A DNA stretch of 63,578 bases, filler included, from Octopus bimaculoides (GCF_001194135.2; 6 parts of 5 records of this genome joined end to end with filler, not necessarily neighbours in it), one strand, 5' to 3'. Numbered from the whole stretch's first letter, positions 14,517 through 39,439 are shown. Made by a program: numbers and translations. The notes: generated by a model not told the origin, from the letters alone.

Positions 14517-14723
14517 GTTTCAGTGAAAATGGAAATGAACTATATGAAAATGACACCATTCCTTTTAGCCGTCTCCCGTGGTCACCTCGGAATGATCCAC
14601 AAATTGATAGCAAGGGGTGCAGAAGTAAATGCTCGCAACAATGAAGGCAACAATTGCCTGCACCTTGCTGTGAAGAAGGAGGTATTTCATTCTGAGGAAG
14701 AACCCTTAATTATTTTAAATGAG
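14517..14723 (+). CDS. Ankyrin-repeat exon (first identifiable coding exon)
   Basis: Encodes TPFLLAVSRGHLGMIHKLIARGAEVNARNNEGNNCLHLAVKK, ankyrin consensus. Pyrimidine tract plus AG at 14515-14516; donor GAG|gtaag at 14724. An alternative acceptor at 14522-14523 is possible. Confidence 0.88.
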
Positions 14724-15274
14724 GTAAGTTTTAAAATTGCTTGTTAGTATATGTGTGTGTGAGAAAGAGAGAGTGAAGGAGAGAGAGAGAGAGAAACAGA
14801 CACTTTGATTGTCATCTCTCAATTCACAGCCATCAACCCCTTTTCCTTTACAATTAAGTAACCCAGTCTTCTTGATAACCCTAGTTATATTTTGTAACTA
14901 ACAACATCCCATGTCCATCTACCCTCAAAGGCATGGCCTCTCCTCCGTAAAGAAAGTAATCCATCTTTGATCATCATCATCATCATCAAAAGAAGAAATA
15001 TTCCTTACTAATAATGATACATGGTAGAAAAGAGGTTTGTGTGACATGATAGCCAATAACCTTTATAGTGTTGGTGTCCTGATAAATACATCCAGTCCAT
15101 TCTATGAAGAATTCTTACCGAAACAGCTCCCTATCATACTTTTTTTATATGATATATATGCTCTGACATTTTGTGCAAATGCCATAAAAATGTTGAATCT
15201 CAAAACACTAGAGAATGGATACAACAAAGCAAAGTCCTTAGAGAGTTTTCCCTGCATTTAAATATTGTACAACT

Positions 15275-16425
15275 ATATATATTAGGCCTCACCGAGGCAA
15301 TGACTTCTGACCGAGACCTTTGGAAATATACTGTGCGTGAGAAGACCCGGCAAGCCAAGTAAGACCAAAATCCAACGCCTCTGCCTGGGGTGTAGCCAGC
15401 ACACTTACGCATAACACTCCTTCTTTGGACAATAAACTCTGCTTGCGAAGACCTGTTGGGGCAAGCGAAAGCGAAATCGTGATGGCACCTGTACCAGTAG
15501 ATCACTAAGAGCACCGTCCGAGCGTGATCATTGCTAGAGCACCAGCTGTCTGGTTTTTGTGCCGGGGGCATGTAAATAGCACCATTTGAGCGTGATCATT
15601 ACCAACATTGCCCTCCTGGCACATGAAAAGACAGTACCGCTGGACTGGCTCCTGTGCAGGTGGCACATAAAATACACCATTTCGAGCGTGGCCGTTGCCA
15701 GTACCTCCTGACTGGCCTTCGTGCCGGTGGCACGTAAAAACACCCACTACACTCTTGGAGTGGTTGGCATTAGGAAGGGCATCCAGCTGTAGAAACTCTG
15801 CCAAATCGTCCAACCCATGCTAGCATGGAAAGTGGACGTTAAACGATGATATATATATATATATCGTCGTCGTCGTTTAACGTCTGCTTTCCNNNNNNNN
15901 NNNNNNNNNNNNNNNNNNNNNNNNNNNNNNNNNNNNNNNNNNNNNNNNNNNNNNNNNNNNNNNNNNNNNNNNNNNNNNNNNNNNNNNNNNNNNNNNNNNN
16001 NNNNNNNNNNNNNNNNNNNNNNNNNNNNNNNNNNNNNNNNNNNNNNNNNNNNNNNNNNNNNNNNNNNNNNNNNNNNNNNNNNNNNNNNNNNNNNNNNNNN
16101 NNNNNNNNNNNNNNNNNNNNNNNNNNNNNNNNNNGCCACGCTCAAAATGGTGTCTTTTATGTGCCACCCGCACAAGCCAGTCCAGGGGCACTGGCAACGA
16201 TCTCACTTGAAAATCCTACGGGAGCCAGTCAGGCGGTACTGGCAACGGCCACGCTCAAAATGGTGCATCTCATGTGCCACCCGCACAAGAGCCAGTCCAG
16301 GGGCACTGGCAACGATCTTACTTGGCTTGCCGGGTCTTCTCACGCACAGCACATTTCCAAAGGTCTCGGTCAGTAGTCATCGCCTCGGTGAGGCCCAATG
16401 TACGAAGGTCTTGCCTCACCACCTC
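15275..16425. mobile_element. Tail-to-tail pair of RTE 3'-end copies (gap inside the second)
   Basis: The + copy ends ...gttaaacgatgat(at)n; the minus copy begins immediately with cgtcgtcgtttaacgtctgctttcc. Confidence 0.75.
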
Positions 16426-16888: not shown

Positions 16889-17064
16889 TGCTGCACTGAG
16901 CTCAAACTGAGAAATGAAAACCGGCTCTCGGGTGTAGTGGTTGCTAGTTACCTGGCCCTCCAGGGAGCTGACTTTTACTGTAAAAACAAAAATGGCATAG
17001 CACCACTGGACCTCATTAAAAATGCAAAATTGAATATTAAAGTAATGACATTATTCCCACCACA
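16889..17064 (+). CDS. Degenerate ankyrin-repeat exon
   Basis: tttgtag|TGC...CA|gtaagt. Reads CCTELKLRNENRLSGVVVASYLALQGADFYCKNKNGIAPLDLIKNAKLNIKVMTLFPP (GAD...N..G..PL ankyrin-like). Phase 0 in and phase 2 out match its neighbours. Confidence 0.85.
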
Positions 17065-17683
17065 GTAAGTATTCACTATCGATGACAAGATAAACCAGTA
17101 CAGTTTCTATTTTTTATATCATCATATTTATATGTTTGCAATGTTTTAATTTAGCTGTAACTAGGGGTAGATTTCTATCCAATGGTTTCTTATTTGGTCC
17201 TTCAATGTATGATTATGTAAGGAACTATGCTTTTAATATCTGTCTCAACAGATTTCCAAAATTTCCTGGTGGATGGCCAGATTTTGTTCAACTGTAATGG
17301 TGGGGGAAGACACACGATGCCAGCCACCGAAAGGATCAATTTGATAGCTGGACCATTTCTCACAATCCTTTTAATCATACAATGATAGTGTATCTTTGAT
17401 TGACCTGAAATCATCAGGAAGTTAATGGTGCATAGAAATATGACATTTATTGCAGTCAACTCATCAATTTTGAAAAATGTTGTCAAGTTTTGTACATATA
17501 TATTGTATTGTATTCTCAAAGCGTTCTTCTATTTTAGAACAGTGACTTGTTTTGTTACATCAATCTCCTATATATGAAGCTATAGCAATTGTGTCTCATC
17601 TCTCAATCCATAAAATTCAAAACCAGATGTCTAAATATGGAGGACTTGTTAAACAGATTAGATACAATTAAGTGTTTTATATT

Positions 17684-18089: not shown

Positions 18090-18953
18090 TACATGGTCTT
18101 ATCAACAAGTATCCTGAGTGTTGCCATAGTAATGATGCTAAAGCACACAGAGTGAAGCTGCTTGGCACAGATTGACCTTAATCTCTGTTGTGCATGCTCA
18201 GCTTTAACATTCCAGCTCACTTCCACTGTTTACAGCAGTGCTTGGGAGGAAGGTGTGTAGCATGTGATTGTCGCATTGACATAGAAAGTTGAGCAGAGAG
18301 TCTGCATCAAATTTTGCCAAAAGCTTGGCGATACCTGCTCAAAGGCCTATACAAAGTTTCCAAAAAGTTTTCCTCATTCTTGACACAATGAAGGCGATCT
18401 TCTGCAACTGAAACCCAAGTGTCTTCTTGGTCAGCTGAAAGTTTTGGTACAAATTTGGCAGACATGCGTCTCATACCCAAATGAACTAAACTGTAACTAA
18501 CCTGTGCATCCTCGGATAACTCAAGGATGGTGAGTTGACAGTTTCCCCTCACTGCTGCACGCACATCTGTAATGTCTTTCTCAGTTGTGCTGGTTGTGAG
18601 TCTCCCAGAATGTTTGTCAATATCAACGTTTTTTTCAGCCATCTTGGAAACATCTAAACCACTTGTATGCTTGTGTGTGGCTCATACACCCCTCACGATA
18701 CACATTCTGCAACCTTGCGTAGGTCTCTGAGCAGGTATCGCCATGTCAACTTTCTTTCTCATGGTCAATGCAACGATCACATACTACACACCTTCCTTCC
18801 AAGCACTGCTGTAAACATCAGAGGTGAGTTAGAACACTAAAACTTAGTGCGCATGCACAGATTAAGATCAATCTTCGCCAAATGGTTTCACTCTGCATGC
18901 TTTCAATTTGTTACTATGGCAACAGTCCAGATAATTATTGATCAGACCTCATA
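18090..18953 (-). mobile_element. Fold-back non-autonomous mariner with ~250 bp inverted arms
   Basis: TA-bounded ends (tacatggtcttatcaacaagtatcc / reverse complement tatatgaggtctgatcaataattatc). The minus strand encodes a transposase relic (KWFRCFQDG...RRMSAKFVPK). The 5' region is duplicated in inverted orientation at ~18090-18350. Confidence 0.8.
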
Positions 18954-19313
18954 TATAGACACAAACCTGTGTACATGTATATTTGTTCATAAGAAATGGA
19001 GTCTAGAAGTGAAGTATGGATTTTGAATATATGTAGTGCACTGTGTGCCCACCTGTTTTTCTGATGTATCAGAGTCAAGACATATATTGAACAATATCTG
19101 TATAAATATACACATGTATGTGTGTGTGTGTGTGTGTAGCACTTATATACACATAAATCTGTCTGTACGGAATTGTTTAAAACAGAATTTGTGTGACACA
19201 CATGATGGTCACAGCAGAATTTCATAATATTTTGTACTGCAAACATGTATACCATGTAATATTTGTTATAAAGGAATGTTGTTGATGGGATGTGTTTATA
19301 TTTTGTTACATAG

Positions 19314-19456
19314 ATGTCGCTGGTGTCAAGAGAAAAAGGCCTCTGTCACACTTCATCCATGTCAACATATTCTTGTTTGTGAGAACTGCTGTTCTGAAAT
19401 GACATTTAAGAGATGCCCCATGTGTCGACAAAGCGTACTCAGGAAAAGTGGATTTG
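19314..19456 (+). CDS. C3HC4 RING finger exon (IAP/MIB-type)
   Basis: CRWCQEKKASVTLHPCQHILVCENCCSEMTFKRCPMCRQSV. Acceptor tacatag, donor G|gtaag; phase 2 in, phase 1 out. Confidence 0.92.
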
Positions 19457-20180: not shown

Positions 20181-20439
20181 ATTTTTTGGATAACACTTTC
20201 TATTCATATAAACATTTATATTCTCACACTTCTCAGTTTCTTAATGATATTAATACTAATAGAAGCTCAGTTTTGTTTGTCTTTCACAATTTGGTTTTAG
20301 TTCTGATTTGATTGTTTCGTTCAAATTACCCCATGAAACCGTGCCGTTCTTGTTTTACCTGGGAAAGGAATTACAATTAGTACTTTGCACAATTTTTCAT
20401 GGCACTACCATAATAGCAACTGTGCCGAGACACAATCAT

Positions 20440-20720
20440 CATCATCATCATCGTTTAACGTCCGCTTTCCATGCTAGCATGGGTTGGACGATTTGACTGA
20501 GGACTGGTGAAACCGGATGGCGACACCAGCCTCCAATCTGATTTGGCAGAGTTTCTACAGCTGGATGCCCTTCCTAGCGCCAACCACTCCGAGAGTGTAG
20601 TGGGTGCTTTTACGTGTCACCCGCACGAAGGCCAGTCAGGCGGTACTGGCAACGGTCACGCTCAAAATGGTGAATTTTACGTGCCACCCGCACAGGAGCC
20701 AGTCCAGGGTCCCTGGCAAT
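20440..20720 (-). mobile_element. RTE 3'-end copy
   Basis: Reverse complement of the 13850-14165 family. Confidence 0.75.
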
Positions 20721-22094
20721 GATCATATTTATTGTTAATGAACGTCACATGTTCTTTAGTCAGATTATATGCAATCTATCTTGTACTGTAATGATAGACA
20801 GTGTGCTATTCTATTTCCCATATCCCCATTAATATGACATTTAATTAGCCATCATTCATTACCATTCTTACATGTCTATGTCTGGAATGTAACCTATTTT
20901 CTCATAGCATCATCTTGTACCCTCACCTAACATTTTATAACTTGTTACTCTTTATGTAATTTCACTGTTTTTCTTGGGTACAAGACCACATCCCTAAAAA
21001 CTGGGATTATTGACATCTATGGTTTAGTAAGGTCCAGATGGTTCTGTGTCTTGGCTTCATTCCATAGGAAACAGTATATTGTGAAACGTTCTGTATATTT
21101 ATTTGATACAAGGTAGATGTACCTTATAAAGCTTGTAGAGATATTTTCAATTAGTTGATCTCAGTTAGCATTAGTGACAAATGTTGTATAGTAGTGGTGA
21201 TGGCATGTGGTGTGAGTAGGGTTAACATATTCCTTGTAATATCTTTTTATTTTAACAATGACATCAGAAAGACAGTTTCTATCAGTTAAACCCTTCTGCA
21301 AGGGAATAAATTTTGCTTCTTGAAATTTGCTGGGTTTCACCATATTGCGATCCACCATATTGATAGAGAGGACATCAAGAATGTGAAAAACTTTGATTGA
21401 TATATAGATTAGTACTCTTGAGTACCAGGTCTTCTGTGCCTTCTGTGTTTTAGGAGGACTAATACCACTTTCTGTTCCACCTGTGTAGAAGTAATCATTT
21501 TTCATCCGGAAAGAAAGCTGCTTTATTTAGGAGGACGAATGATGTTCAGATGTCTTAAAGTATCTCCTGAATCAATTGACATTCTGGTGAAGTGTATTGT
21601 GGAGAGTTAGAATTAAGGATTACAGAAAGCAAAGAGAGCAGGTGTATCTTGATCCTACCTGATCATGTGGTGTGTCATGTGTTTGTAACCACATCTTTGA
21701 TGACCAACTTAGTTGACATTGGAATTAAGCAGAAGATGAGGAGAATGTCGGTTAGTGAAATCTAGAGGAGAGAGGACAATGCCGTGTCATAGATTTGGCA
21801 CAGATATAAGAAAAGAAAGACAGAACAAAGAGATAAACAATGTCATCGAGTGATAATTAAATGAGATAATTGCAACATTGATAGATTATGTAGGATGCCT
21901 TACTAGAGAGATAAAGTTTAGGGATGTTATTCTATTTAACTGTACGCCTAAATATTGAGCTCTTACATGGTAACACTGTTGAAACAGTAGAAAGGTTGAT
22001 CTTCAATGAATGAAATGTTTCATGAAAATGAAATATAGATTAGTAACAAAGAAATTCTACCATGAAGTATAAAACTTGGAAATATTTATTTCAG

Positions 22095-22145
22095 AAAGTC
22101 CAATGTTTGAAGAGAAAGAAGTGCAGACAGTTTCAGATGCAGTTA
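22095..22145 (+). CDS. Mini-exon 1 (51 nt, phase 1-1): ESPMFEEKEVQTVSDAV
   Basis: atttatttcag acceptor, gtgagt donor, open frame, KEVQT motif. Confidence 0.75.
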
Positions 22146-22364
22146 GTGAGTATAAATTAACAGTAACTAATTGATTTCTATAACGTTCAACTTCAGGTTA
22201 AGCAAAACGTTTCAAGTGAAAGCTCCACAGGTTTCATTCCTAATTTCCATTTAAAAGGTTATCTGAGAAGTAATTCTATTTAAGAGATTACTGAAATTTC
22301 ATAAAATCAGGGTTAGCATGGTTGGTAAAATGGACAAAGTCAGACGACACAATAGAATTAATAG

Positions 22365-22562
22365 TGCCGTCTGACTGGCTCCCATGCCAGTGGCACATAA
22401 AAAGCACCCACTACAATCTTGGAATGGTTGGTGTTAGGAAGAGCATCCAGATGTAGAAACCTTACCAGATTGGAGCTTGGTGCAGCCTCGTGGCTTGCTA
22501 GTCCTCAGTCAAACCGTCCAACCCATGCCAGCATGGAAAGCGGACGTTAAATGAAGATGATA
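22365..22562 (+). mobile_element. RTE 3'-end copy
   Basis: Same 3' UTR family with gatga tail. Confidence 0.7.
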
Positions 22563-24204
22563 ATGATTGTCTTTTAGAATAGAGAACTAAAGTGTTATTT
22601 ATGTGTAAACATGGGACTTAATTAGAATATTTTTGTTTCTTTTTCTGCTAAGATTTCCGATAGGTTAGGGTTGTTGTTGATGTTATTGTCGAGCCAGATG
22701 TCCGTCAAATCATGTCGTCTTTTGATGGGGTAGATATCCAGAATGTCTTTGACTAGAATATATATTGAAGTTGTAAATTAAAACAATACTATATTAACTC
22801 TGTATAAGAATATTGCTCATTAAATTACTTCTAATTAATGTTTAATTTTATATTGAACTGTGAACATCTGTTTACATTTAAACAAAGTATTGGTATTAAG
22901 ATGAAATATACAGATAGGAATAAAATATGAGTTGTTGGTGTGATTTGAACACACATATCCCTGTTGGTAACTGTATATGATTAACACCAGCTATATTCCT
23001 GGAATAACATTTATTATCCATATAGGCATTCTTGTATTCACACTTATTGGCATTTAGATGATATCAATACTAAGAGAGGAATAGTTTTCTGAGGCTTTAC
23101 CTTTAAGTTTTGCTTCTGACTTGGTTGTTACATTCAAATTAGATTACGAAATCTGGTGATTGTTATTTGACCAGGAAAAAAAAAAATTACTATTTCATTT
23201 GGTGCTGGACCTGGTAACCTTTTACCTTGACTGCTTATGGAACTACCATAATATCAACTATGCTGAGACACAATCGTATTCATTGTAATGAATAACACAT
23301 GTTCTTTAATCGAATTATATACAGTCTGTAAGAATATATAGTATCACAATATCAGGCAATGTCCTATTGTACTTTCCATATACTCTATTAACATGATAAT
23401 TAATCTGCTATCATTCAGTAACTCTTTTATACTTGTATATCTTAAATTTAATCATATTTTTTTTGTCACAGCATCATCTTCTACCCTCATCTTACATTTT
23501 ACTCCTAGTTACCTTCTGTGCATTTCTACTGCTTTTCTTGGATACAAAACCACATCCATACAAACTGAGATTATTGACTTCTCTAATCCTGTAATGTCTA
23601 GATGTTCTTGTGTCTTGTCTTCATTCCATATGAAATAATATGTGAATCGTTTCTGTGTATTTATGTGACACTAATTAGATATATTTTATAAAGCAAGATA
23701 GTGACATTTTTAATTAGTTGATCTCAATTAGCATTGGTTACAAATGTGGTATAGTAGTGGCGATGGAGTGTAATGCGAGTAGGGTTACATATTTCTTGTA
23801 ATGTTCTTATATTAATAATGCCATCAAAGAGACAGTTTCTGTCAGTTAAGCTCTTCTGCATGGATGTAATCTTGTGTCTTCGAAGATGTTTGTCACTGGG
23901 ATTTTGCTCTTTTGAAGTCAACCACATTGATATAGTAGATATGAAAGGAGCGGGCAAGAATTTTTGACTAATGTTTAGAAGGGGTTTGACAGAGATCTTT
24001 TCTATTCTTGTGAACCAGGCCTTATGTACCATTTCAGATATTTTCACTGCAATTGGTGGATGTCCAGATGAGCATAAGAAAATGTAAGCCAAAACCATAT
24101 TGTTCACCACTTGACCATTGATGATCAGAACGTCTCACAATAATATAATGTAGATTAGCAGAGATACTCGGCCTTGCTTGGGATTAAAATAGCATAGTTG
24201 TTTT

Positions 24205-24520
24205 ATTGTTTTACTTGTTTCAGTCACGTGACTGCGGCCATACTGGAGCACCGCCTTTAGTCGAACAAATAGACCCCAGGGTTTATTCATTGTAAGCTAG
24301 TACTTATTCTATCAGTGTCTTTTGCCAAACCGTTTAGTTATGGGAACGTAAACACAGCAACATCGGTTGTCAAGTAATAATGGGGGTACATACACAGGCA
24401 CAAACAAATGCGTGCGCACGCACACACACAAATATGCACATATCTACAACAGACTTCTTTCAGTTTCCATGTACGAAATCTACTTGCAAGGCTTTGGTTG
24501 GCCTGAGGCTATGATATCGT
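24205..24520 (-). mobile_element. SINE
   Basis: gactgcggccatactggagcaccgcc...gtacttattctatcag...gtaaacacagcaacatcggttgtcaag, shared family core. Confidence 0.6.
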
Positions 24521-25910
24521 CGTCATCATCGTTTAATGCCCGTTTTCCATGCTGGCATGGGTTGGACAGTTTGACTGGAGACTGGCAAGCCAGGAGGCCA
24601 CACCAGGTTCCAGTCTGATCTGGCAATGTTTCTACAGCTGGATGCCCTTCCTAACGCCAACCACTCCGAAAGTGTAGCAGGTGCTTTTTACATGCCAGCG
24701 GCATGGGAGCCAGTCAGTCTGCACTGGCATTGACCACATTCAGATGGTGCTTTTTATGTGCCACGAGCACGGGGAGCCAGCTAGGCAGTGACCCACACAT
24801 GGATGTATGGTGCTTATTGTGTGCCACCAGTACTGATAATGGCCACAACTACAATTTCCATTTGGTTGTGATTTAATTTGATTTTGATTTACTTGACTCA
24901 ATAGGTTTCCTCAAGGATGGCATTTTGCCCGACGATTCAAAGGCACTTTTTAAATGGGCTGCTTATGCGACACGGGTGTAGGCTATGGCTGTGATCTCAC
25001 TTTCCTTGCCGAGTCTTCTCAATCACAGCATATCTCCAGAGGTCTCAATCTTTCGTCATTGCCTCTGTGAGGCCCAACATTCAAAGGTCATACTTGACCA
25101 CCTCATTTCATATCTTCCTGGGTCTACCTCTACCCCGGATTCCTTCAACTGTTTGGGAGTGGCACTTCTTCACACAGCTCTCCTCATCCATCCATAGTAC
25201 ATGACCATACCAACACAAACGTCTCTCTTGCACACTGCATCTGATGCTTCTTATGTCCAACATTTCTCTCAGGGTGCTTACACTGTCGTGTGTGCACACT
25301 GACATAACACATCCAGCGGATCTTGCCAGCTTCATTTCTTTCGAGCCTACGCATGTCTTCAGCAGTCATGGCCTGTGTTTCACTGCTGTGTAGCATGGCT
25401 ATTCGCAGACATGCATCATACAATCTACCTTTCACTCTGAGCGAGAGGCCCTTTGTCATCAGTAGGGGTAGAAGCTTTCTAAACTTTGCCCAGGCTATTC
25501 TTATTCTAGTGGCAATGCTCTCTGAGCATCCACCCTCACTACAGATTTGGTCACCTAGGTAGCAGAAGCTATCAACTACTTCTAGTTTCTCCCCCTGGAG
25601 TGGGATGGAATCAGTTTTCTGAGCATCTATGGTGTTTATTGCCCCTGGGCATCTGCTACATAAAAAAGCTATCTTCCCAGTTAACCTTCCTTTGATGTTG
25701 CTGCACCTCTTATGCATCCATAGCTTACACTGGGTACATCTTATAGAGTTTCTACCTATACCTTTTCTACAGATTGATCAGGGCCAGCTACCTGAAGGCG
25801 TTTGTGATGTGTTTGCCTTCCTAATTACTAGGACTTTGGTTTTTGCAACATTGACTCTAAGGCCCTTCGATTCTAAACCTTGCTTCCACACATGAAATTT
25901 CTTCTAGTTC
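24520..25910 (-). mobile_element. RTE-clade LINE, 3' part of RT plus 3' UTR
   Basis: GLRVNVAKTK...LEVVDSFCYLGD...RIRIAWAKFRKLLPLL...WYGHVLWMDE...RGRGRPRK, then the 3' UTR ending in a (GAT)n tail. Confidence 0.88.
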
Positions 25911-25954
25911 TGGTTGTGATTCTGCAATGAGAGCAAGGTTGATTTTTATTATAG

Positions 25955-26055
25955 ATTTGGAGCCTGGTGTAGCCATCTGGTTCACCAGTCCTCAGTCAAA
26001 TCGTCCAACCCATACTAGCATGGAAAGCGGACGTTAAACAATGATGAACGATGAT
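25955..26055 (+). mobile_element. Short RTE 3'-end copy
   Basis: ttggagcctggtgtagccatctgg...ggacgttaaacaatgatg. Confidence 0.65.
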
Positions 26056-26163
26056 ACATACATACATACATATANNNNNNNNNNNNNNNNNNNNNNNNNN
26101 NNNNNNNNNNNNNNNNNNNNNNNNNNNNNNNNNNNNNNNNNNNNNNNNNNNNNNNNNNNNNNN

Positions 26164-26218
<55 letters not shown>

Positions 26219-26400
26219 ATATATATATATATTTTTATATATATATATGTATGTATGTATATATGTAATGTGAGATAATAGTTTCATTATGTATATATCA
26301 TATACATTGTGAAACTATTATCCCACATTACAATAGAGATGTTATTGTTTCACTTTTGACATGTATTACTGAAACAGTCTAAGAGATTGCTCCGGGCTCG

Positions 26401-26568
26401 CACTAGACAAGAAGTTGAAAATTTCTTTGGCCCATTAAACTCCATGGATCCTAACTAACGCATGTGTAAAATTTGAATGAAATCGGTTGGGTAGTTCTCG
26501 AGTTTTAGTGATGCACACAAACAAACAGACAGATGGACGCACATGCTCAGTTTTATATATACAGATTA
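26401..26568 (+). mobile_element. Helentron-associated (HINE/DINE-like) short element
   Basis: Starts actaga, contains aaatttgaatgaaatcggttgggtagtt...acaaacagacagatggacg, and ends ttttatatatacagat, the typical layout of such elements. Confidence 0.45.
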
Positions 26569-26629
26569 TGGATGAAGATTAAAAAATAAATTGATAATAA
26601 AGTGTAAAACTTGCAAATATTTATTTCAG

Positions 26630-26683
26630 TGAGACCAAAATCAGTGACAAAGCAAGTCCAGACAGTTGCATCCACTTCAGAAA
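26630..26683 (+). CDS. Mini-exon 2 (54 nt, phase 1-1): xRPKSVTKQVQTVASTSE
   Basis: atttatttcag acceptor, gtaagt donor, open frame, KQVQT motif. Confidence 0.72.
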
Positions 26684-27158
26684 GTAAGTGTCAAATAACT
26701 GAACATAATTAATTTCTATAAATATTACCTTCACCTGAGCTACTGTTTGTCAGAATGACTGGGAACAGGGCCCATTCCTATTTTCCATTTGAAAGTAAGA
26801 TGTAAAACGATTCTATGAATTATATTACTGAAAAAAGAAAATGAAAAAGGAAAGACAAAACTAAGAGATAAACAGTGTTATCGAGGAGTAAGATGAGAGA
26901 GTTTCAGAATTGCTAAATAGTGTAGGGTGTCTCAATAGAGAGAGGACGATCCAAAACCAATTGAACTCATTGGTGGTAGGGTTTTCACTAGAAATGTGGT
27001 ATTGAAGCATTTGCTTAGATAAAGGTTGTAATATTTTAATTTTATTTTCCGTATCATTTTCATGCCATCATTTCTGACGGCACGGGCACACTAGTAGATT
27101 AATAATAGAGATAAAGTTGTTTTCTATTAAGTATAAAACTTAGAAACACATATTTCAG

Positions 27159-27209
27159 AGGCTTCAAAGATGAAAGAGAAAGGAGTCCAGACGGTGGCTG
27201 AGGCAGCTG
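27159..27209 (+). CDS. Mini-exon 3 (51 nt, phase 1-1): xASKMKEKGVQTVAEAA
   Basis: catatttcag acceptor, gtgagt donor, open frame, KGVQT motif. Confidence 0.72.
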
Positions 27210-27978
27210 GTGAGTATGAATTAAGAGTATCTAATTCTTTGCTATAAAGTTTACCTTCACCTGAGTTATTTTGTTTGTCAGAATGTCTGGGAGCAGGTTC
27301 TTCTTTCCTAATCTCCACCTGAAAGGTTGGCTGTAAAGTAATTGCATTAAATGTTATAATGAAATTCCATTCACCGAATACCAGTTTCTGTTCTGGCAGT
27401 GTAGAATGAATCATTATTCACCTTTTAAAATGCTACTTTATTAAGGTGTCTTGAAATATTTCCTCAATCAGACACCAACAGCAATGTTTCACAAAAGAGT
27501 AGCTGTATGTTTATCCTACCTGAGGTTGTGTGTTGTGTTTGTGGCCAGATCTTTGATGATCAACTTGGTTGACATTCATACAACACGTAAGAGGTGGACA
27601 ATGTTGTTTTGAGATGTCTAGAGGAGAGAGGACAGTGTGAAGTAATAGATTTGGCACTAAAATAGGAAATGAAAGAGAAAACTAAGTAAAAATTTGTTAT
27701 CAATTGATAATTGAATGAGATTATTGCAGAATTATCACATTATACAGAATGTTTCAATAAAGGAATGGGATCTAGAAATTTAATCTAGTTTGTGATGACT
27801 CAAAATACTGAGCTATTACACAACACTGTTGAGCCTGTAAAAATGTTAGCCAAAACCATATTGGTCACTAGTTGACCACTGATGATCAGTACAACTCATA
27901 ATGAAATAATATAGATTATTGATGAAGATTAAAAAAAAATTGATAATAAAGTGTAAAACTTGCAAATATTTATTTTAG

Positions 27979-28032
27979 TGAGGCCAAAATCAGTGACAAA
28001 GCAAGTCCAGACAGTTGCATCCACTTCAGAAA
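27979..28032 (+). CDS. Mini-exon 4 (54 nt, phase 1-1): xRPKSVTKQVQTVASTSE, near-identical to mini-exon 2
   Basis: atttattttag acceptor, gtaagt donor. Differs from mini-exon 2 by one synonymous change (AGA/AGG). Confidence 0.7.
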
Positions 28033-28449
28033 GTAAGTGTCAAATAACTGAACATAATTAATTTCTATAAATATTACCTTCACCTGAGCTACTGTTTGTC
28101 AGAATGACTGGGAACAGGGCCCATTCCTATTTTCCATTTGAAAGTAAGATGTAAAACGATTCTATGAATTATATTACTGAAAAAAGAAAATGAAAAAGGA
28201 AAGACAAAACTAAGAGATAAACAGTGTTATCGAGGAGTAATTAGATGAGATAATTGCAGAATTATTAAATAGTGTAGGGTGGAAATTTAGGAATGTGAAT
28301 CTATTTTATTGTAGACTTAAATATTGAGTTATTCCTTAGTAACACTGTGGGAATTTTTTAAAATGTTAACCAAAACCATTGTGGTCATCAGTTGAATGTT
28401 GTTGAAAGAAACGTCTCATCTCAAAATAATAAAATATTGTATATTAATA

Positions 28450-29815
28450 AAGATGAAGAAATTTTACTCATCATTGTTTCACTGTTGTACCTGTGCACCT
28501 TCCACACTCAGAAACTATTTTGCCAGTTAACTTTCCTTCGATCTTGCTGCACTTGTTATGAGTCTATAGTTTGCACCGGGTAATCTTATGAAGTTTATAC
28601 CACCAATGCCTTTCCTACAGATCGAGCAGGGCAATCTACTTGAAGGGATTTGAGATTTACCTGCTCTCCTACATTCTAAGACTTTGGTTTTTGTTTAGCT
28701 CTAAGACTCTTTGACTCCAGATCTTGCCTCCAGGGTTGAGATTTCTTCTCCAGTTGAGGTAGGGAATTGATTATAAGAACAAGGTCATCAGCACAGAGGA
28801 TCTCCCAGTGGTAGCATGTCTTAAATTCCTCTGTTAATCCCTGAGGACTATGATGAACAATACGGGGCTGAGGACTGATCCTTGGTGAACCCCTACTTGT
28901 ACACTGAATTCCTGGCTATGCCTGTTGGTAATCTTCACCTTACTGACAGCATTTCTGTACTTGGCCTGTACAGTTCCCTCCAAACACTCATCTATCCCTA
29001 GCTTCCACATTGATCACCAGATAAGGGAATGGGGGACTCTGTCAATGGCTTTCTCTGTGTCAACAAATGTCAGGTACATGGGTTTCTTTTTGGCTAGATA
29101 TTTCTTCTGCAGTTGCCTAACTAGGAATATAGTGCTGGAACAAATCCGAACTGCATTTAATCTACTCTAATATTTCTCTCCCTAATTGATTGAGCTATGA
29201 CCTTCTCTGGGATTTTCATCAACTGGTCCAGCTGTTTGCTGCCTCTGTAATTATTCCTGTCCAAGGCTTCACCTTTGCCTTTGTAGCAGTTGACTATGAT
29301 GTTGCTATACCAATTGTTGGGTATGACTCCCTTGTGGAAAACCTGATTAACTATACGGGTGGCTTAGCCTCCTGTATAGTCTGCCAGATATTTTAAGCAT
29401 CTCAGCAGAAATTTCTAATGGGCTGGGGGGTTTCCCCTGTCTTCATGTCCTTAATTGCTTTATCTACTAAGCTACTGTTGATTCGGATAGCTGGTCCCCT
29501 CAGTTGGGTCAACATCTCGCAGAAGACTCTTCCTCCCATTCATTCTCCACATTTAGCAGTTTTAAAAATGGCATTTCCAAGCCTCTTTTTTTGCAGAATC
29601 ATTAAATGCACGTGAAGCATTATCCATGCAGGCACATTTCTCTTGTATGACCTCATGATTTTCTCTCACACACTGTCTTGCAATCGGAAACACTTCAAGT
29701 CTTTTGGTCCTCATGTCGTTTTTGCTACTCCCTTGACTAGATGTACTTGTCTCCTAGCTTCTCATCTAGCTATGTGATACAGTTCCCTGCTACCCCTATT
29801 CTTCCACTCCTATAC
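28450..29815 (-). mobile_element. RTE-clade LINE RT-domain fragment (same family as 24520-25910)
   Basis: The minus strand reads GVHQGSVLSPVLFIIVL followed by a degenerate YADD region, and contains the same Cys-rich insert. Confidence 0.8.
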
Positions 29816-29854
29816 AGTGCTATGAAATATAAAACTTGCAAACACATATTTCAG

Positions 29855-29905
29855 AGACTCTGATGATGGAAGACAAGCAAGTCTGGACGGTGACAGAAGC
29901 AGTTG
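29855..29905 (+). CDS. Mini-exon 5 (51 nt, phase 1-1): xTLMMEDKQVWTVTEAV
   Basis: catatttcag acceptor, gtgagt donor, open frame. The motif Q is replaced by W. Confidence 0.65.
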
Positions 29906-30854
29906 GTGAGTATAAATTACCAATACCTAATTGATTTCTCTAACATATAAACTATACAGATAGAAATAACAGTATCAGTTTCCAGTGTGACTTGAACACT
30001 CAACTCTTTGTTCATAACTGTCTATAATTAGTACCTTTGGCTTTAGTTCTGACTTCATTATTTCCTTTAAATTAGATCTTCAAACCTAGTCCTTGTAATG
30101 TGGCCAACAAAAGAATTTATTATTAGTAGTTGACACAGAACCTAGAAATGGTTTTCTTTGATTGCTCACATAGCCACCATAATATCAACCTTGCTCAGAT
30201 GCAATCATATTTATTTTAATGAAGGCCACATATTCTTTAGTCAGGTTATATACAATCCACATCAATACCTAGTATTTCACTGTCAGTCAGTGTGCTATAG
30301 TATTATATATATATATATATGTGTGTGTATGACAGAGAAAGAGAGAGAGAGAGAGATGAGAGACAGGTATTCCCCGTATAGAATAGACTTTGTAGTGCTC
30401 AGGTGCACTCGAGCAGGTAGAGGAGTAAATGTAAGGAGAAGGAGCAAGTTAGGTTAAGTTGGTATACAAAGAATATTAAATACATTTGATACAAAAAAAT
30501 GTACATATGCTTACATATAAAAAGGTCCGACTTACACAGAATAGAAATGATATCAGGAATTAAAGGGGTTGAAGAAAAGTTTTAATATTCTTTGTATATC
30601 AATTTGCCTAACTTGCTTATTCTTCCATTTATTCCTCTGTGTGTATGTGTGCGCACGCGTGTGCATGTGTGCATCCACCATTAACATGATAATTAATCTG
30701 CTATTGTTCATTAATTTTCTTACACCTGTATGTCTATGTAACCTTATTTTGTCATCTTCCCTCACCTAACATTTTACACTCTGTTACCCTCTATGTAATG
30801 TGATTGTTTTGCTTGGGTACAGGACCATAACCCTACAAAGTAGGATTATTTCTG

Positions 30855-31260
30855 TATTTTTATGAAACGAACTGTAAAGAAATAGCTGGAGGTAGTTGGT
30901 AGCTTTCTTTCTTTAGGTAGCAATGTCAATAACAGATGTGGATGCTGTGAGAGCGTAGCTGGGAGAATAAGAATAAGCTGGGCAAAGTTCAGATTTGCTT
31001 TGCTTTCGAAGAAGACCCATCAAGTCGAGTGGGATCGTAGTCATGGCAGATACTGGTGTCATGCAAGTAGCACCCATGTTGGTGGCATGTAAAAGGACCT
31101 GTTACGCTTTCAGAGTGGTTGGCATTAGGAAGGGCATCTAGCTGTAGAAAGCATGCCAAATGAGACTGGAGTCTGGTGCAGCCCCTCAGCTTTCCATCCC
31201 TGGTCAAATCGCCCAACCCATGCTAGCATGGAGAATGTACATTAAATGATGATGAGGAGG
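30855..31260 (+). mobile_element. RTE LINE fragment plus 3' end
   Basis: LEVVGSFLSLGS...GRIRISWAKF, then the ggaagggcatc...ccatgctagcatgg...gatgatga tail. Confidence 0.65.
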
Positions 31261-32608
31261 ATGTGGATGAACTGAGTTGACATCAGAAATAAACAAAATG
31301 AGATAAATGTTGTTTAGTGAAGGAGGGCTCTTGTCTATTTGGTTGTGGTTCTAAATATTTAGCTTATCACATATTGTTACAACTTAGTAGTTTTGACCAA
31401 AAGCATGGTTGGTCACCAGTTGACCATTTATGATAGAAATGTTTTACAATAATAAAATGTAGATCATTAATTCTTTCGTTACTGTATTTGAGATGCTCTG
31501 TGTTTCTTTCAATTACTTTAACTATAACAAAGAATTTAGTAAAATAATTTAGTTATCATTCAACTAGTGTTAAGAACATAAATTGTAACTAAGGTTTGGT
31601 GGAAGATTTTAATTCACAACTTAAGAAAACATTTGTACTCAAAGCCAGAGCTGGTTTCAACCAGGTTGGTAATGAAAGGGTTAATAAAGATAGTGAAATT
31701 ATGCTATAAAATGTAAAACTTGGAAATATCAGTCATTTGGTTTGAGATTGTTATGGAGATGTTACGTAGATCACCTAAGACAGCATCAGTGGATGACATA
31801 ACAATACTAACGACAGAGCAAAATGGTATGCAAATAGTTCTCGATGGACTGGATTAACTAATTAGTTGGTCAAGAATGTGGTTTAAGGCAATAAATAATG
31901 TTGTCAGTTGCCAAAGGTCAACAGAAACAAGTGAAATTCAAAGAAGCAGGAGAAACCATGCCAAAGGATAAAGACAGACCTGTAAACTGTTGAGGACAAT
32001 GGTACACCACCTCATTGTCCAACAAAAGTAGAGGCATTGAGATCATGGCACAAAGAGAAGACACCTTATAAGCAATAGATAAGTCAAAACTTTTTGGAAA
32101 TAAAGGATTTAAAAAAAATTATTTATTAAGGAGTCTTAAAAAAAATGTTTCCTGAATCAGATGATGTTCTTGTGAACTGGGATGTGGGGAGTTATGATTC
32201 AAGATTACAAACAACAACCCTTAACAAAGAAGTTAGGTATATGTTTATCCTACATGTCTGCCATTGTATTTGTGGTTAGATCTTTGGAAAGCACCTTTGT
32301 TTGACATTGGAATTAAGCAGAAGATGAGAAGAATGTTAGTGAAGTCAAATCATAGATATAAGGAAGGAAATAGAGAGTACCAAGAAAAAAACCAGTCTTA
32401 TCAAATGATAATTAAATGACGTCTTAATAGAGAAACGAGATTTAGGAAGGTTAATCTATTTTGTTGAGAACCTATGGGACTACATGGGACCACTGTAGAA
32501 AGATAAAAAAAGTTGAACAAGACCATAGTGGTCACCAGTGGACCATTGACAGTAAGAATGCCTCAGTAATAAGGAATAGATTATAAACCTTGGAAATATT
32601 TATTTCAG

Positions 32609-32680
32609 AGAGTCGAAAGCTGGAGGAGAAGGATCTTCTGAGGGTGGCCAAGAGGTTAGGAAGTGATTGGTGGCAAGTGG
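32609..32680 (+). CDS. Death domain exon 1 (72 nt, phase 1-1): ESRKLEEKDLLRVAKRLGSDWWQV
   Basis: atttatttcag acceptor, gtgagt donor. L..VA..LG.DW matches death-domain helices 1-2. Confidence 0.85.
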
Positions 32681-33599
32681 GTGAGTATGAAATTACAGTA
32701 CCTAACTGATTTCTATAAATTTTACTTTCACCTGAGTTATTTGTCAGAATGAAAAAGTACAGGTTACATTTCTAATTTCCAATTGAAAGGTTAACTGTAA
32801 AGCAATTCTATTAAAGATATTACTAAAAGTTCATAAAATATCCACTGAGGTTAGCATGGTTGGTAATAATGGATAAACTAGAAGATACAAATGGCGTTTA
32901 ATATTGTCTTTTTGGAATAAGGAAGAAAAATATGTTGTTCAAGGGTAAACAGCTGAGTTAATGACATTTTGGTTTGTCCTTATTCCAAAATAAGACCTTG
33001 AGTTAGGTTCTTCTTGAAACCATTATGGGTTGGGTTATTGTGTTGGAAGCTGATAATTGCAATTTATATTGCCATATTGGAATGACTTTACCACATGATA
33101 TATGTCTTTAGATGTTTCAATAAAAACAGGCTGAATAGGGGTGACGCAGCCACATCATATCATATTCCCTGCAGCCAAAAAGAGAGAATCCCTTTAAAGA
33201 AATTTATCAGAAAATGAATATTCACAAGTCAAGCCAAACTGGAGGTGGCCTCTCTTACTGGGACTGACATAATTAATAACTGGATAGGTTCAGGAAAATT
33301 GGTCGAATCTGGAGTTCATTGAAGAAGACTCAAATGGGATTGAATTTCGATTTTCAGTGTCCTATTGGGAACTTTACAAAGGGGATTGATTGCGCTGAGA
33401 TATATTACTTTCATGACCCTTTGAATATCAGATCTGAAGTCTGCCAGATTAAAATAGATTTATAGGATTCCTTTAAAAGGTCTCTGGAGTAATGTTACTC
33501 ATAACGATGTATAGTTTAGAGATCAGGGAGTCTCTCCAGGTTGAGTCACTTCTTCTCCACACCTGTGATACTACAGAAATGTGATCAGAATGTCACAGG

Positions 33600-34137: not shown

Positions 34138-34337
34138 GTGTTTTTTTAGGTATTGAAATTACTGAGCTGGAAATTGATGATGGTTCTAATAACACTGTAA
34201 AACAGGGCTACAATATGCTGTACGAATGGTTTACAAGTTGTGATCCACAAACACGAATACTCGAAACATTAAGTGCAGCTCTTGAAGAAGCTGAGTGTTT
34301 GACTGCACTTGAGTGCTTGTCATTAGTTGCAGAGTGA
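34138..34337 (+). CDS. Terminal exon, death domain C-terminal part
   Basis: ttgcag acceptor. GVFLGIEITELEIDDGSNNTVKQGYNMLYEWFTSCDPQTRILETLSAALEEAECLTALECLSLVAE* fits the death-domain pattern LG...EL..I / Q...ML..W / L..AL. Confidence 0.85.
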
Positions 34338-36230: not shown

Positions 36231-39030
36231 GATGCATCTGTTTCTGGCTTCACACCCCAGCGGAAACTTGAATCGTCTTCCAGCCATGCTCAGAGAAATG
36301 AACAGCGGTCAGTTCGTGTATGTGCTTGTGTGTGTGTGTGCATGTATGTGATTGTCCCACATGAAACTGCCATACAACAAAATTAGGAAAACAGTAAATG
36401 CAGGCATGGCAAAACATTTCCTTTTTTTACTGAATATTCCATTGAAGACGATGCTGCTTTTTACAGCTCACTTGTTGCCAATATCTGAAATTGAGCCAAG
36501 GGTTATGGCATGGCATACCTGGTATTGTAAAAGATATCACCAAAGTGTCAGTGATTCAGATGGCTGTCTTTATTTCCTGCGTACGTCCACCACCAGAGGA
36601 GAGAATGTGAACCCCATTTCAAATGACGAGATTGACACATTTTCAGCAGCAATCTGTCGGGGAACTTAGAGCTACCTAGATAGACAGACAGATAGGTAGA
36701 TAGCCAACCAGTCAGAGAGACAACATCATATATATATATATATATAGATAAAGAGGGACAGACAGACAGAGTGAGAGGAAGCTGCTTGTAGGTTTAGGTG
36801 TGACTACATCAACTTAGGAGGTGCATGGACACAACAGGAAAAGCATAAAAGCTCTCACCAGACAGAATGGATTGCCTGCTATTTATCCGACTTTTGATTT
36901 GACAACGGGGTAACGGCACATCTTTGTGACCTGTCCCTTTGTAATTGTTCGCCTCATTTAAAATAGACATGCACCAGTCACCATGGACGTAGCTGCTCCC
37001 CAGATACCAACCTGTCCAGTATGCCTTGAATGATCGCTGCTCTTCTGTCGGTTGAATTGAGCACGAAAGAGTGGGTGTTTGTTAGGGATGCTGAGACAGG
37101 CAGACTTTTTTATTTGTCAGGTGATGACAGCTTCAAATACCTATGTTTTCTTTGGTGGAATTCAGCGTGAAGGAGCAGGTGTCTGTCAGGACCTGCAAAA
37201 CTAGTGGTTTTCTATCTTTATCGGACAAAGACAATGGCAAGTATATCATTGGCAGAAATAAGACAGAGGTAGACACAGGTCTGGCTCTCGGTGAAGCATT
37301 GCACTACAGCTTCTTCAGAATTGGAATCAGAGGCTGGAATGACTGTGTGGACATATCTATGAAAGGAAGGTGGACAGAGTAACATCCATTGAGTGCAGAC
37401 GTCGCCGGGGCCATTTCACTTTGCTCAATTTCTGAGTGTATTGAATTTGTTCAGGAGTGGAGTCTGCATTGGTAACTGCCTGAGAGTTGAAGCACGTGAG
37501 GATGGCAGGGCTCAAAGTCATCGTCAGTCACTCATCATATGACAGCCTCTCATGCGAAGACTTGGACACTAATGATAGTCTACAATGAAGATCTGTAGTA
37601 GCCATTACCAAGTTCTCCTGTGTGGCACAGAACATTTAGAATGGCCTTTCCCAAATTAAATTACAACAAAGTGTTTGGAACAGATTCTTTCTGTGACATA
37701 TTGAAATAGTGTCAATAGATTCCTTTACTAAGTAAATTATTTTTGTCCTGCACCAGTCCTCAGTCACTTCAACTTTATACCACAAATCTCTACTTTTATA
37801 TAATGTTTAGAACAAAACTGAGTAACTTTCAATGGTACACCATGTCCTGTTGCTGCAGACTGGTTTTGCTTTATTCCAAAAGCGATAACTTCATGGAATA
37901 CCACTATTTGAAGCAGTAAAGTGAGATATGTTCTTCAGCCAATGATGGAGGGAAGCGGTATTGAAGAAGAACTCACTTTGACCGTGTACGCTCATCCATT
38001 CCATGGGAGGCTGGAAGTCTTAAGATAGACGTTGAGGACATTTTCATTGAATATATTGCATCTTGCAATCTGTACCTGTCTTGGAAAAAGCTTCTAGTAC
38101 ATGTCTGCTGACAAACCTTCTATGGCACACCATCACCTGATGCTACAATCCACTCTTGCTTTATTTCCAAACTATTTACTTCTTTCTTGCTGCAAACTCT
38201 AGGCTCAAAAGTTTGAATCAGGCCTTTGGTAGACATTTTATTAGAGATGACAATGTTTCTCCTGCTTGTGCTATAATAAAATGCACCTAGAACCCTTTAT
38301 AAAGTGGTTGGTGTTAGGAATGACATGGCATTCTATAAAGTCAGTAATGTTTAAGTGAGATATGTTCCTCAATCAATGAAGGAGAGAAAGAATTCTGAAG
38401 AACAACTGACTTGAACAGTGACAACTCATCCAATCCATGGGAGCTTGGAAATATGAGGATGAATGGTAGGGATGTTTGTCATTGATTGTATTGCATTTTG
38501 CAACCTGTATCTACCTTGAAGAATGAGAGAGAGAGAGAGACAAAGATTGTAACAACAGCAAAGAAAAGTTCTCTGCTTGGAATGTAAGGATAAAATTACT
38601 GTGAAATAAGATAGGGTGCTTATACGTGGAACGCATTTCATTTGTCATTCTTTCAGTTTATGAGAGATGTTCGCTTAAATAATAACTACAACCATATCCT
38701 ATCAGTAAACTTTAAAAAAAATGTAAAACAACCAAAAATGCTGTCCTTAACTCAAATGTTTATCACTAAATGACTTATTTTAGATCTCTCTTCCAAAATA
38801 TTATATTAACTGGATTCTCTTTTAAATGTTCCACTTTACAAACCATGCTAACCTCGTTGGATAATTTGTGAAATTTCAGTAATATCAATATGTTTAATAG
38901 AATTACTATACAGCAAAGTTTTCAAATGTAAATTAGGAATGGAACCTGTTCTCTGTCATTCTGATATACAAAGTCTCAGGTGAAGGTAAACTTTATAGAA
39001 ATGGATAAGTTAATGTTAGTTTCTATTTAC

Positions 39031-39111
39031 ATGGTTCCTCTGATTTTTTTCTTAGAAGACACTAATGTGGTGTGAAATCAGGCCAGTCATTGTCTGAAAT
39101 ACTTGGTTTGT
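39031..39111 (-). pseudogene. Inverted pseudo-exon homologous to the death-domain exon 1 / mini-exon unit
   Basis: The minus strand has an attcatttcag acceptor and a gtaaat donor 81 nt apart (phase 1-1), reading DKPSISDNDWPDFTPH*CLLRKKSEEP. The intron after it (38830-39030, reverse complement) aligns by eye with 32681-32870. Confidence 0.55.
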
Positions 39112-39439
39112 CTGAAATGAATATTTTCATGTTTTACATTTTAGAATATGATTTGATTATATTTATTTATAATCTATATTTGATTATTGTGAGACATTTT
39201 TATCTTCAGTTGTTGACGGGTCACCACTATGCTTTTAGTAAGCACCATTTACGGTTTCACTATGTGTTTTTTGTTTTTAGTTTTGTCTTTCCTGTTGTAT
39301 GTCTTTGTCTTTAATGGAGTTTAAGGCACAGATATAAGAAAATAAAAACAAAAGTAAAAGGACATTGTTATAAAAAGGTGATTACGTGAAATAATTGCAG
39401 TATTGTTAAATTAAATTGGATGTCTTAATACAGTGGGGT

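Follow-up and report, generated by a model that had tools for sequence, protein, structure and literature searches.

How a short linear motif can come out of a folded domain is the question raised by one locus of Octopus bimaculoides. The gene at this locus encodes ankyrin repeats, a RING, and a C-terminal death domain, and between the RING exon and the first death-domain exon (DD1) lie five mini-exons, U1 to U5; an original prediction made from the sequence had proposed that they are tandem duplicates of DD1 that gained a new motif. The window, meaning the whole stretch of DNA analyzed, is 63,578 nucleotides (nt) long and consists of six parts of five records of this genome joined end to end with filler. 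Its usable piece, 13324-42188, is 100% identical to chromosome record CM046605.1 of assembly GCA_001194135.2 (window coordinate + 62702 = CM046605.1 coordinate), which carries the same 242-N and 89-N gaps. The plus strand of the piece holds the 3' half of the gene, namely ankyrin exons, the RING exon, the five mini-exons, and two death-domain exons (DD1 and DD2; Table 1). The mini-exons are, with high probability, shortened tandem copies of DD1, as judged by comparison of the sequences; this origin is well supported, while the function of the motif is predicted.

All six exons are built alike. Each has two split-codon bases at its start and one at its end, which makes it phase 1-1, and each is followed by the donor GT(G/A)AGT and by about 200 nt of downstream intron that is homologous in all six, as had been claimed. 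The acceptor context is likewise common to them, AAAAC(T/C)TT(G/A)..AAA....T(A)TTT(C/T)AG, but U4 ends in TTTTAG and not in the TTTCAG that had been given for every exon. The two exon beginnings quoted in the original prediction are present, at 32609 for DD1 and at 27159 for the exon it called mini-exon 3 (U3 here). At the same offset from the acceptor, DD1 reads GAT CTT CTG AGG GTG GCC while U3 reads GGA GTC CAG ACG GTG GCT, and the changes CTG>CAG and AGG>ACG do turn L-R into Q-T as described. Two parts of the description needed correction: the Q-T motif holds for U1-U4, but U5 has W in place of Q, and the fragment was correctly assigned to death-domain helix 1, but DD1 also encodes the start of helix 2.

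The homology between the mini-exon units, each an exon with its flanks, and the DD1 unit extends over the exon itself as well as the flank before it and the intron after it, which bears out the proposed duplication. When the window is compared with itself by BLAST, the U1 and DD1 units form a single 313-nt high-scoring segment pair (HSP) running through the exon (E=4e-32), and the DD1 downstream intron is 76% identical to the U2 and U4 introns over 151 nt (E=4e-25); HSPs cover both the flanks and the exon of mini-exon and DD1 units. Leave-one-out hidden Markov models (HMMs), made from the flanks of U1, U2, U3, and U5 only and not including DD1, recover both flanks of DD1 in nhmmer, the downstream intron with E=1.7e-28 and the acceptor side with E=6.7e-5. 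Compared with DD1 from the acceptor without gaps, the exons are identical at 27/51, 27/54, 29/51, and 28/51 positions (50-57%), while shuffled exons give only about 14-15 matches (about 28%; P<=1e-4 each), and the same test in four paralogue loci gave P<=8e-4. In one joint alignment, all 17 units keep the same register from -25 up to and including the donor. With similarity above chance, symmetric phase, and homologous flanks in register, the mini-exons show the features of tandem exon duplicates. A cluster of mutually exclusive exons was also considered and rejected, since RefSeq isoform X1 (P0210) includes U1-U5 and DD1 together.

Tandem exon duplication is common and usually yields alternative versions of the same structural element. 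The octopus exons resemble such duplicates in being same-strand neighbours with matching phase, homologous splice contexts and introns, and birth and death of copies within the paralogue family. They differ in that the copies are not mutually exclusive, isoform X1 using five of them plus the parent exon, and in that the copies have lost the structural role of the parent, are 21 nt shorter, and are re-used as a repeated linker peptide.

Seven paralogue loci were examined together with the window: L001 from O. sinensis, L002, L003, L005, L006, and L007 from O. bimaculoides, and L004 from O. vulgaris. Throughout these about 216 kb, every match of the flank models stands next to a linker exon, a decayed linker exon, or DD1, in the orientation of the gene and within the stretch bounded by the RING exon and DD2, with the sole exception of an inverted copy at 38829-39143. 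It is barely conceivable that the flanks are instead a dispersed repeat, for example an exonised short interspersed nuclear element (SINE), that stands by chance beside exons which are not duplicates of each other. The inverted orphan copy lies outside the gene and the introns are full of other interspersed repeats, as this explanation would have it; but every other copy (more than 25, at eight loci in three species) has one orientation, the same register to an exon or decayed exon, and a place between the RING exon and DD2, the similarity continues through the exons themselves, and there is no Rfam or tRNA-like signal. An unrelated dispersed repeat, which the original prediction had named as the finding that would speak against it, does not therefore explain the flanks in the window and the seven loci.

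The direction of the change, from DD1 to mini-exon, had only been proposed and is now supported by four lines of evidence. Mini-exon number varies among the paralogues, with L005 and L006 showing none, though the L006 locus has 4137 N. In L005 only 363 nt lie between the RING exon and DD1; the DD1 there has the same acceptor context, and its downstream intron matches the flank HMM at E=2.5e-30. In L006 both flanks are present and occur beside DD1 only, and an intron block called block X, which recurs at these loci, lies upstream of DD1. Because the DD1 of loci without a visible mini-exon still carries the flanks, these are the introns of DD1 itself.

Paralogue copies are also graded in length, with forms of 72 nt (SLKMEENHFHSTAKILSVKQQQV), 78 nt (APKFEDRCVQTEATCQELGAASQAI), 57 nt (SPKSEDKCVQTEVASEEI), and 51 nt (NPNFEEKQRETMAKRV). 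The full-length 72-nt copies (SLKMEENHFHSTAKILSVKQQQV; SPKFEDKGVQSDAQLLGATSKQG) align to DD1 codon for codon and ungapped, the 78-nt copies (APKFEDRCVQTEATCQELGAASQAI) retain L-G, and one 51-nt copy (NPNFEEKQRETMAKRV) retains A-K-R. In the joint alignment, the 51-nt form is DD1 minus 21 internal in-frame nt, the codons K-R-L-G-x-D-W-W, with the last ~9 nt and the donor retained, while removal of another set of 21 nt from the 78-nt form gives the 57-nt form. Since the nucleotides lost in 72>51 and in 78>57 are not the same, the half without the motif was probably trimmed twice.

The C-terminal 89 residues of the protein are a real death domain. Against Pfam Death (PF00531) the window protein scores 17.7 bits, under the 22.6 cut-off (E=0.004), and a precomputed PF00531 match is present in several paralogues. 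A profile of 13 family members compared with PDB matches the death domains of RIPK1 (1.4e-10), ankyrin-3 (5.9e-10), and PIDD (1.8e-9), as well as the solved death domains of CRADD, TRADD, and FADD, and the match to solved domains spans positions 3-85, including the part encoded by DD1. The AlphaFold2 model of paralogue P0001 has the death domain as a helical bundle with a predicted local distance difference test (pLDDT) of 87-96. DD1 encodes the conserved death-domain positions L9, V12, A13, L16, G17, and W20, matching solved structures, and is therefore part of an old domain. Some predicted isoforms of the paralogue proteins P0029, P0030, P0033, and P0046 join the RING exon directly to DD2; these skip DD1 and would yield a death domain without helix 1.

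A reverse or mixed direction would have the K-x-V-Q-T exon arise alone, for example by exonisation of an intron, with the flanks and 5' half of DD1 converted later by mini-exon units. Conversion between units does occur, the flank tree does not split DD1 units from mini-exon units, and L-Q-D is found at the motif position in some paralogue DD1 exons. Loci without a visible mini-exon, however, keep the DD1 flanks and block X, so that no conversion donor is present at those loci; the alignment of the 72-nt copies to DD1 is ungapped through all 23 codons and takes in A-K, L, and Q-V of the 3' half; and the conserved death-domain positions that DD1 encodes match solved structures. This makes an independent origin of the motif exon very improbable.

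Several observations weigh against the derivation of the mini-exons from DD1 or limit how far it can be followed. Identity between units is 67-69% for the mini-exon and about 77% for exon plus flank, so the exons are not better kept than their surroundings. Neighbor-joining trees of 18 units, built from flanks only and from exon plus flanks, are poorly resolved, and the DD1 flanks form no clade of their own; such a tree had been suggested as a check, and the trees obtained are too poor to order the duplications. Because of these trees and of the blurring by gene conversion that the U2/U4 tract (below) shows, the number and order of duplications are unreadable. Word-indexed protein searches returned only paralogues of O. 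sinensis, O. vulgaris, and O. bimaculoides, at <=64% identity, the window's own protein not being among them. An exhaustive profile search recovered the window's RefSeq proteins together with 1884 death-domain proteins, and those RING + death-domain matches that were looked up were Octopus in every case; polarity therefore rests on evidence from within the family. Use of the exons, finally, is taken from RefSeq gene models.

According to these models, the mini-exons are part of a continuous reading frame. The RING exon ends in phase 1 and is spliced to U1, and splicing of RING+U1+U2+U3+U4+U5+DD1+DD2 gives one open frame through the stop, whose product matches the C-terminus of RefSeq XP_014776758.1 (P0210) in every letter. 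This protein of 563 amino acids, named "E3 ubiquitin-protein ligase MIB2 isoform X1", has U1-U5 plus DD1 all together, while isoform X2 (545 amino acids) is without U4 and XP_014776764.1 (528 amino acids) is without two mini-exons; RefSeq isoforms thus hold 5, 4, or 3 mini-exons, P0079 and P0211 being without one or two. On this annotation-level evidence the mini-exons are cassette exons. Their status as coding cassettes is already annotated in RefSeq, and the novelty is their origin.

The intron between U1 and U2 contains an assembly gap, bordered by a SINE-like repeat to the left and by (TA)n to the right, and no exon is touched by it. The donor of U1 and the acceptor of U2 are both phase 1 and so fix the frame across the gap, and XP_014776758.1 joins U1 directly to U2. 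The same 89-N gap stands in CM046605.1, so the distance from U1 to U2 is unreliable, and a further unit may be hidden in it.

Although the gene is named MIB2 in RefSeq, the name is misleading, because Pfam finds in full-length P0210 only ankyrin families plus one zf-C3HC4_3 RING; no MIB/HERC2 or ZZ domain and no tandem C-terminal RINGs were found in it by Pfam. Like MIB2/Mind bomb, the octopus protein has ankyrin repeats followed by a zf-C3HC4_3-type C3HC4 RING; unlike them, it is without MIB/HERC2 or ZZ, has a single RING, and ends in a death domain. RIPK1, PIDD, and ankyrins have the death-domain superfamily in common with its C-terminal 89 residues, but not its architecture of ankyrin repeats, IAP-type RING, linker repeats, and death domain. 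By the sequence searches that were run, the gene encodes an Octopus-specific ankyrin-repeat/RING/death-domain protein. Its paralogues are clustered on several O. bimaculoides chromosomes, for example at 11.46-11.69 Mb of CM046629.1 (L002, L003, L006) and on CM046630.1 (L005, L007), and carry unrelated RefSeq names (MIB1, MIB2, PSMD10, ankyrin-3, RIPK1, PPP6 ankyrin subunit).

What became of the encoded peptide can be followed position by position in 28 distinct short copies and 20 distinct DD1 peptides. The two sets have P2, K3, E6, K/R7, a hydrophobic residue at 9, V12, and A13 in common, while the short copies differ from DD1 by 9 L>V, 10 L>Q, 11 R>T, 14 K>E, and the loss of L16-G17..W20. 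As helix 1 already supplied the K, the hydrophobic residue, and the V, three substitutions were enough to make K-x-V-Q-T-V. In a set of nine copies whose DNA has diverged by about 30%, codons 7, 9, 10, and 11, which encode K, V, Q, and T, show only synonymous variation (AAA/AAG, GTG/GTC/GTA, CAG/CAA, ACA/ACG), with the exceptions of one K>R and the Q>W of U5, while the adjacent codons take 3-6 amino acids (Fisher p=0.04). This points to constraint on the K-x-V-Q-T core.

The core fits a loose consensus published for LC8/DYNLL binding, [D/S]-4 K-3 X-2 [T/V/I]-1 Q0 [T/V]+1 [D/E]+2 (PMC3078936). LC8 is reported to prefer a positive residue at -3, mid-sized hydrophobic or hydrogen-bonding residues at -1 and +1, a hydrogen-bonding residue at -4, and a strand-breaking D/E/P at +2 (PMC6607443). 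U1-U4 have V-Q-T, which agrees with Q0 and with T/V/I at -1 and T/V at +1, while V-W-T of U5 does not. K is at -3 in all five mini-exons, and -4 is E, T, E, T, and D. The residue at +2 is V in the window motifs but E (V-Q-T-E) in the 26-residue paralogue copies, and canonical K-E-T-Q-T is found at the same exon position in paralogues P0076, P0081, and P0109. For P0001, AlphaFold2 models the repeat region (182-243) with pLDDT <50, while the ankyrin repeats and the death domain are at about 90. The K-x-V-Q-T peptides of the mini-exons are tentative candidates for LC8/DYNLL-binding sites. TRAF-binding, caspase-site, and SUMO-site readings were considered by inspection only and were rejected as fitting a few variants but not the conserved K-x-V-Q-T core.

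The candidate sites may also be compared with those of established LC8 partners. Multivalent clients with TQT-type arrays include ASCIZ, Nup159, KANK1, and Panoramix (PMC10046861, PMC12803091, PMC7861614, PMC6607443), and sites about 17 residues apart are described as typical of multivalent clients that are zipped into duplexes by LC8 dimers (PMC10046861, PMC12803091). The octopus protein is similar in having K-x-[T/V]-Q-T candidate sites 16-18 residues apart, in a segment for which disorder is predicted in a paralogue, beside domains that act as dimers or oligomers. It is different in that the putative sites are V-Q-T-V and not T-Q-T-[D/E/P], in that each is a separate cassette exon, and in that the sites descend from a death-domain exon and not from point mutation in an existing disordered region.

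Evidence against LC8 binding, and against constraint as its sign, comes from several sides. The contrast between core codons and their neighbors comes from a small sample of copies that are not independent. The window motifs have V and not T at -1 and V and not D/E/P at +2, and no strict T-Q-T anchor preceded by K/R at -3 is present in the window mini-exons. Many peptides containing the anchor are reported not to bind LC8 (PMC6607443). The disorder prediction comes from paralogue P0001 and not from the window protein.

These points bear on two further explanations that accept the descent from DD1. The copies might have no motif function and be tolerated as in-frame filler, a spacer of variable length in a disordered linker, with common descent and gene conversion keeping K-x-V-Q-T in place. 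Compared between units, whole exons are indeed no more identical than flanks, conversion is active in the U2/U4 tract, many copies are decayed or have lost splice sites, the Q is lost in U5, and V-K-T, V-Q-A, and V-Q-M variants are common in paralogues. Mere filler would not lead one to expect, however, that the K, V, Q, and T codons change only synonymously beside freely changing neighbors in copies about 30% diverged in DNA, that the part without the motif was shortened independently (78>57 and 72>51) while the motif part was retained, or that canonical K-E-T-Q-T occurs in other paralogues; a spacer without function is thus possible but doubtful.

Alternatively, the motif could be functional with a partner other than LC8, either another module that captures a beta-strand or binds a helix, or the protein's own or a partner's death domain, on which the copies would dock as decoy helix-1 peptides. 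The copies do derive from an amphipathic death-domain helix, the P0001 model draws the last repeats and a 24-residue copy as low-confidence helices (pLDDT 52-61), and V at +2 is not the strand-breaking D/E/P favored by LC8. Conservation, however, falls on K(-3), V(-1), Q(0), and T(+1), while L4, L9, L10, and L16 of the hydrophobic face of helix 1 are replaced or deleted, and the spacing and multiplicity are like those of known multivalent LC8 clients (PMC10046861). A partner of this other kind appears unlikely.

The sequence comparisons give, with high probability, the following history of the mini-exons. The ancestral layout was a RING exon, an intron with block X, DD1, and DD2. Tandem duplication in several rounds then copied a block of about 0.5-2.5 kb comprising part of that intron, DD1, and at least 0.2-0.3 kb of the next intron; because DD1 is symmetric, phase 1-1, an extra copy is read in frame between RING and death domain. 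Only the 3'-most copy must still build helix 1 and helix 2, and the upstream copies were released from this constraint. These lost 21 internal nt (the K-R-L-G-x-D-W-W codons) while keeping the donor, and their core E-K-D-L-L-R-V-A became E-K-x-V-Q-T-V-A through CTT>GTC, CTG>CAG, and AGG>ACG. Turnover is continuing, with dead copies, a relic flank, and the near-identical 374-nt U2/U4 tract. As for a function, with LC8 as the putative partner, each copy in the linker, for which disorder is predicted in a paralogue, might present K(-3)-x-V(-1)-Q(0)-T(+1) to LC8/DYNLL, and with sites in series LC8 dimers could zip two chains together, favoring RING dimerisation and death-domain clustering, while splicing would set the number of LC8 sites. 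The most far-reaching form of this proposal is speculative and rather less than likely: that the Octopus family built arrays of LC8-docking cassettes from its own DD1, in which K-D-L-L-R-V was already near an LC8 site, that the half without the motif was trimmed independently at least two times, and that the site number set by splicing controls dimerisation or clustering of an E3 ligase/death-fold module.

Traces of the duplicated blocks and of their turnover are found at several of the loci. Three copies of block X precede units in the window and three more do so in L001, and the block also precedes units in L002 and L004; its strand is the same throughout. Because it recurs upstream of units, and upstream of DD1 in L006, the duplicated block was sometimes as large as about 2.5 kb, while the tight spacing of U2, U3, and U4 (529 and 820 nt) implies that smaller blocks were copied too. 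The U2 and U4 units (26555-26929 and 27906-28281) have in common a 374-nt tract that is 97% identical with a 240-nt identical core. Identity is about 70% in other pairs of units, and to either side of the tract the two sequences have diverged. The tract thus points to ongoing gene conversion or very recent duplication; it could be due to recent gene conversion, to a very recent small duplication, or to an assembly artefact near the gap. The acceptor-side flank at 31698-31729 is the relic of a lost unit between U5 and DD1. Two dead linker exons are present in the O. sinensis paralogue L001 (31167-31244 and 35907-35955) and absent from its annotated protein, one a 26-residue-type copy with its donor GT lost and the other with its acceptor AG changed to AA.

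Beyond the gene, 4.5 kb past the stop codon, the orphan unit at 38829-39143 has an acceptor flank, an 86-nt exon-equivalent with stops, and a downstream flank; of all units, that of DD1 resembles it most. A neighboring inverted paralogue was considered as its source and rejected, as no death-domain, RING, or ankyrin coding remains were found near 38.8-39.1 kb. In the O. bimaculoides paralogue L003, telomere-like (AACCCT)n directly follows a mini-exon donor (32355-32400); this is a telomeric repeat in an interstitial position or else a join made during assembly. The introns and the sequence past the gene also hold at least 8 copies of a ~200-nt interspersed repeat, some in one orientation and some in the other, and one of them abuts the assembly gap; Rfam and tRNA scans of the window piece gave no match, this repeat included. 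Opposite-strand open reading frame fragments in introns, at 25187-25777 (-), 18310-18681 (-), and 28679-29363 (-), are probably mobile-element remains; a PHD-finger-like match (E=2e-5) was obtained for the first, and no Pfam match for the other two.

Table 1. Exons, flanks, and other elements of the ankyrin-repeat/RING/death-domain gene, in window coordinates unless a paralogue locus is named
Feature	Position	Strand	Details
Ankyrin-repeat exons (two)	~14511-14729 and 16889-17065	+	
RING (zf-C3HC4_3) exon	19313-19456	+	Pfam PF13920 E=4e-9; splice sites read; in RefSeq protein P0210
Mini-exon U1	22095-22145	+	51 nt, phase 1-1, SPMFEEKEVQTVSDAV; in RefSeq P0210, P0079, P0211
Mini-exon U2	26630-26683	+	54 nt, phase 1-1, RPKSVTKQVQTVASTSE
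Mini-exon U3	27159-27209	+	51 nt, ASKMKEKGVQTVAEAA
Mini-exon U4	27979-28032	+	54 nt, TTTTAG acceptor, peptide same as U2; isoform X1 only (P0210)
Mini-exon U5	29855-29905	+	51 nt, TLMMEDKQVWTVTEAV; motif Q -> W
Death-domain exon 1 (DD1)	32609-32680	+	72 nt, phase 1-1, SRKLEEKDLLRVAKRLGSDWWQV; helix 1 and start of helix 2
Death-domain exon 2 (DD2)	34138-34337	+	stop codon included
U1 acceptor-side flank	22041-22094	+	nhmmer E=2e-11
U1 downstream intron flank, homologous to that of DD1	22146-22389	+	nhmmer E=2e-52; 313-nt HSP with 32582-32890
DD1 acceptor-side flank	32577-32608	+	HMM from mini-exon flanks only, E=6.7e-5
DD1 downstream intron flank, homologous to mini-exon introns	32681-32890	+	HMM from mini-exon introns only, E=1.7e-28
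Assembly gap inside U1-U2 intron	26075-26163		89 N, length only estimated; not part of any exon
Block X copy 1, upstream of U1	20722-21011	+	part of larger duplicated block; BLAST to 30030-30900
Block X copy 2	23098-23575	+	
Block X copy 3	30030-30900	+	
Block X in paralogues	L001 30240-30583, 32720-33105, 35389-35804; L002 8159-9127; L004 25524-25867; L006 13028-13209		
Relic unit between U5 and DD1	31698-31729	+	acceptor-side flank only, cut before TTTCAG, no exon; nhmmer E=9e-5
Orphan inverted decayed unit	38829-39143	-	nhmmer downstream flank E=1e-24, upstream flank E=0.005
~200-nt repeat	13959-14165, 15700-15850, 20438-20647 (-), 22363-22567, 24523-24725 (-), 25957-26047, 31070-31255, 41938-42117		

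Short linear motifs have usually been described as being born ex nihilo, within stretches that were disordered beforehand (Davey et al. 2015, PMC4654906). The octopus exons are similar to that description in that very few substitutions (L>Q, R>T, L>V) make the motif core. They differ in that the raw material is a duplicated fragment of a folded domain, which supplied K(-3), the hydrophobic residue at -1, and V(+2), and in that the motif was then multiplied by further duplication. In the literature that was searched, no description was found of the gene family or of tandem exon duplication yielding linear motifs.

Folded domains evolve by duplication, and at this locus domain duplication and motif birth meet. 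Most of the intermediates are readable, from the parent exon and its full-length copies to copies that still have the deleted half or lack it, copies that are dead, and paralogues that show none, which gives a stepwise example of how a domain fragment can become a repeated motif-bearing cassette exon. The locus also draws attention to a large, unstudied, Octopus-restricted family of RING + death-domain proteins hidden under misleading RefSeq names. If LC8 binding is true, enforced dimerisation would be a plausible use of these cassettes for a RING E3 with a death domain.

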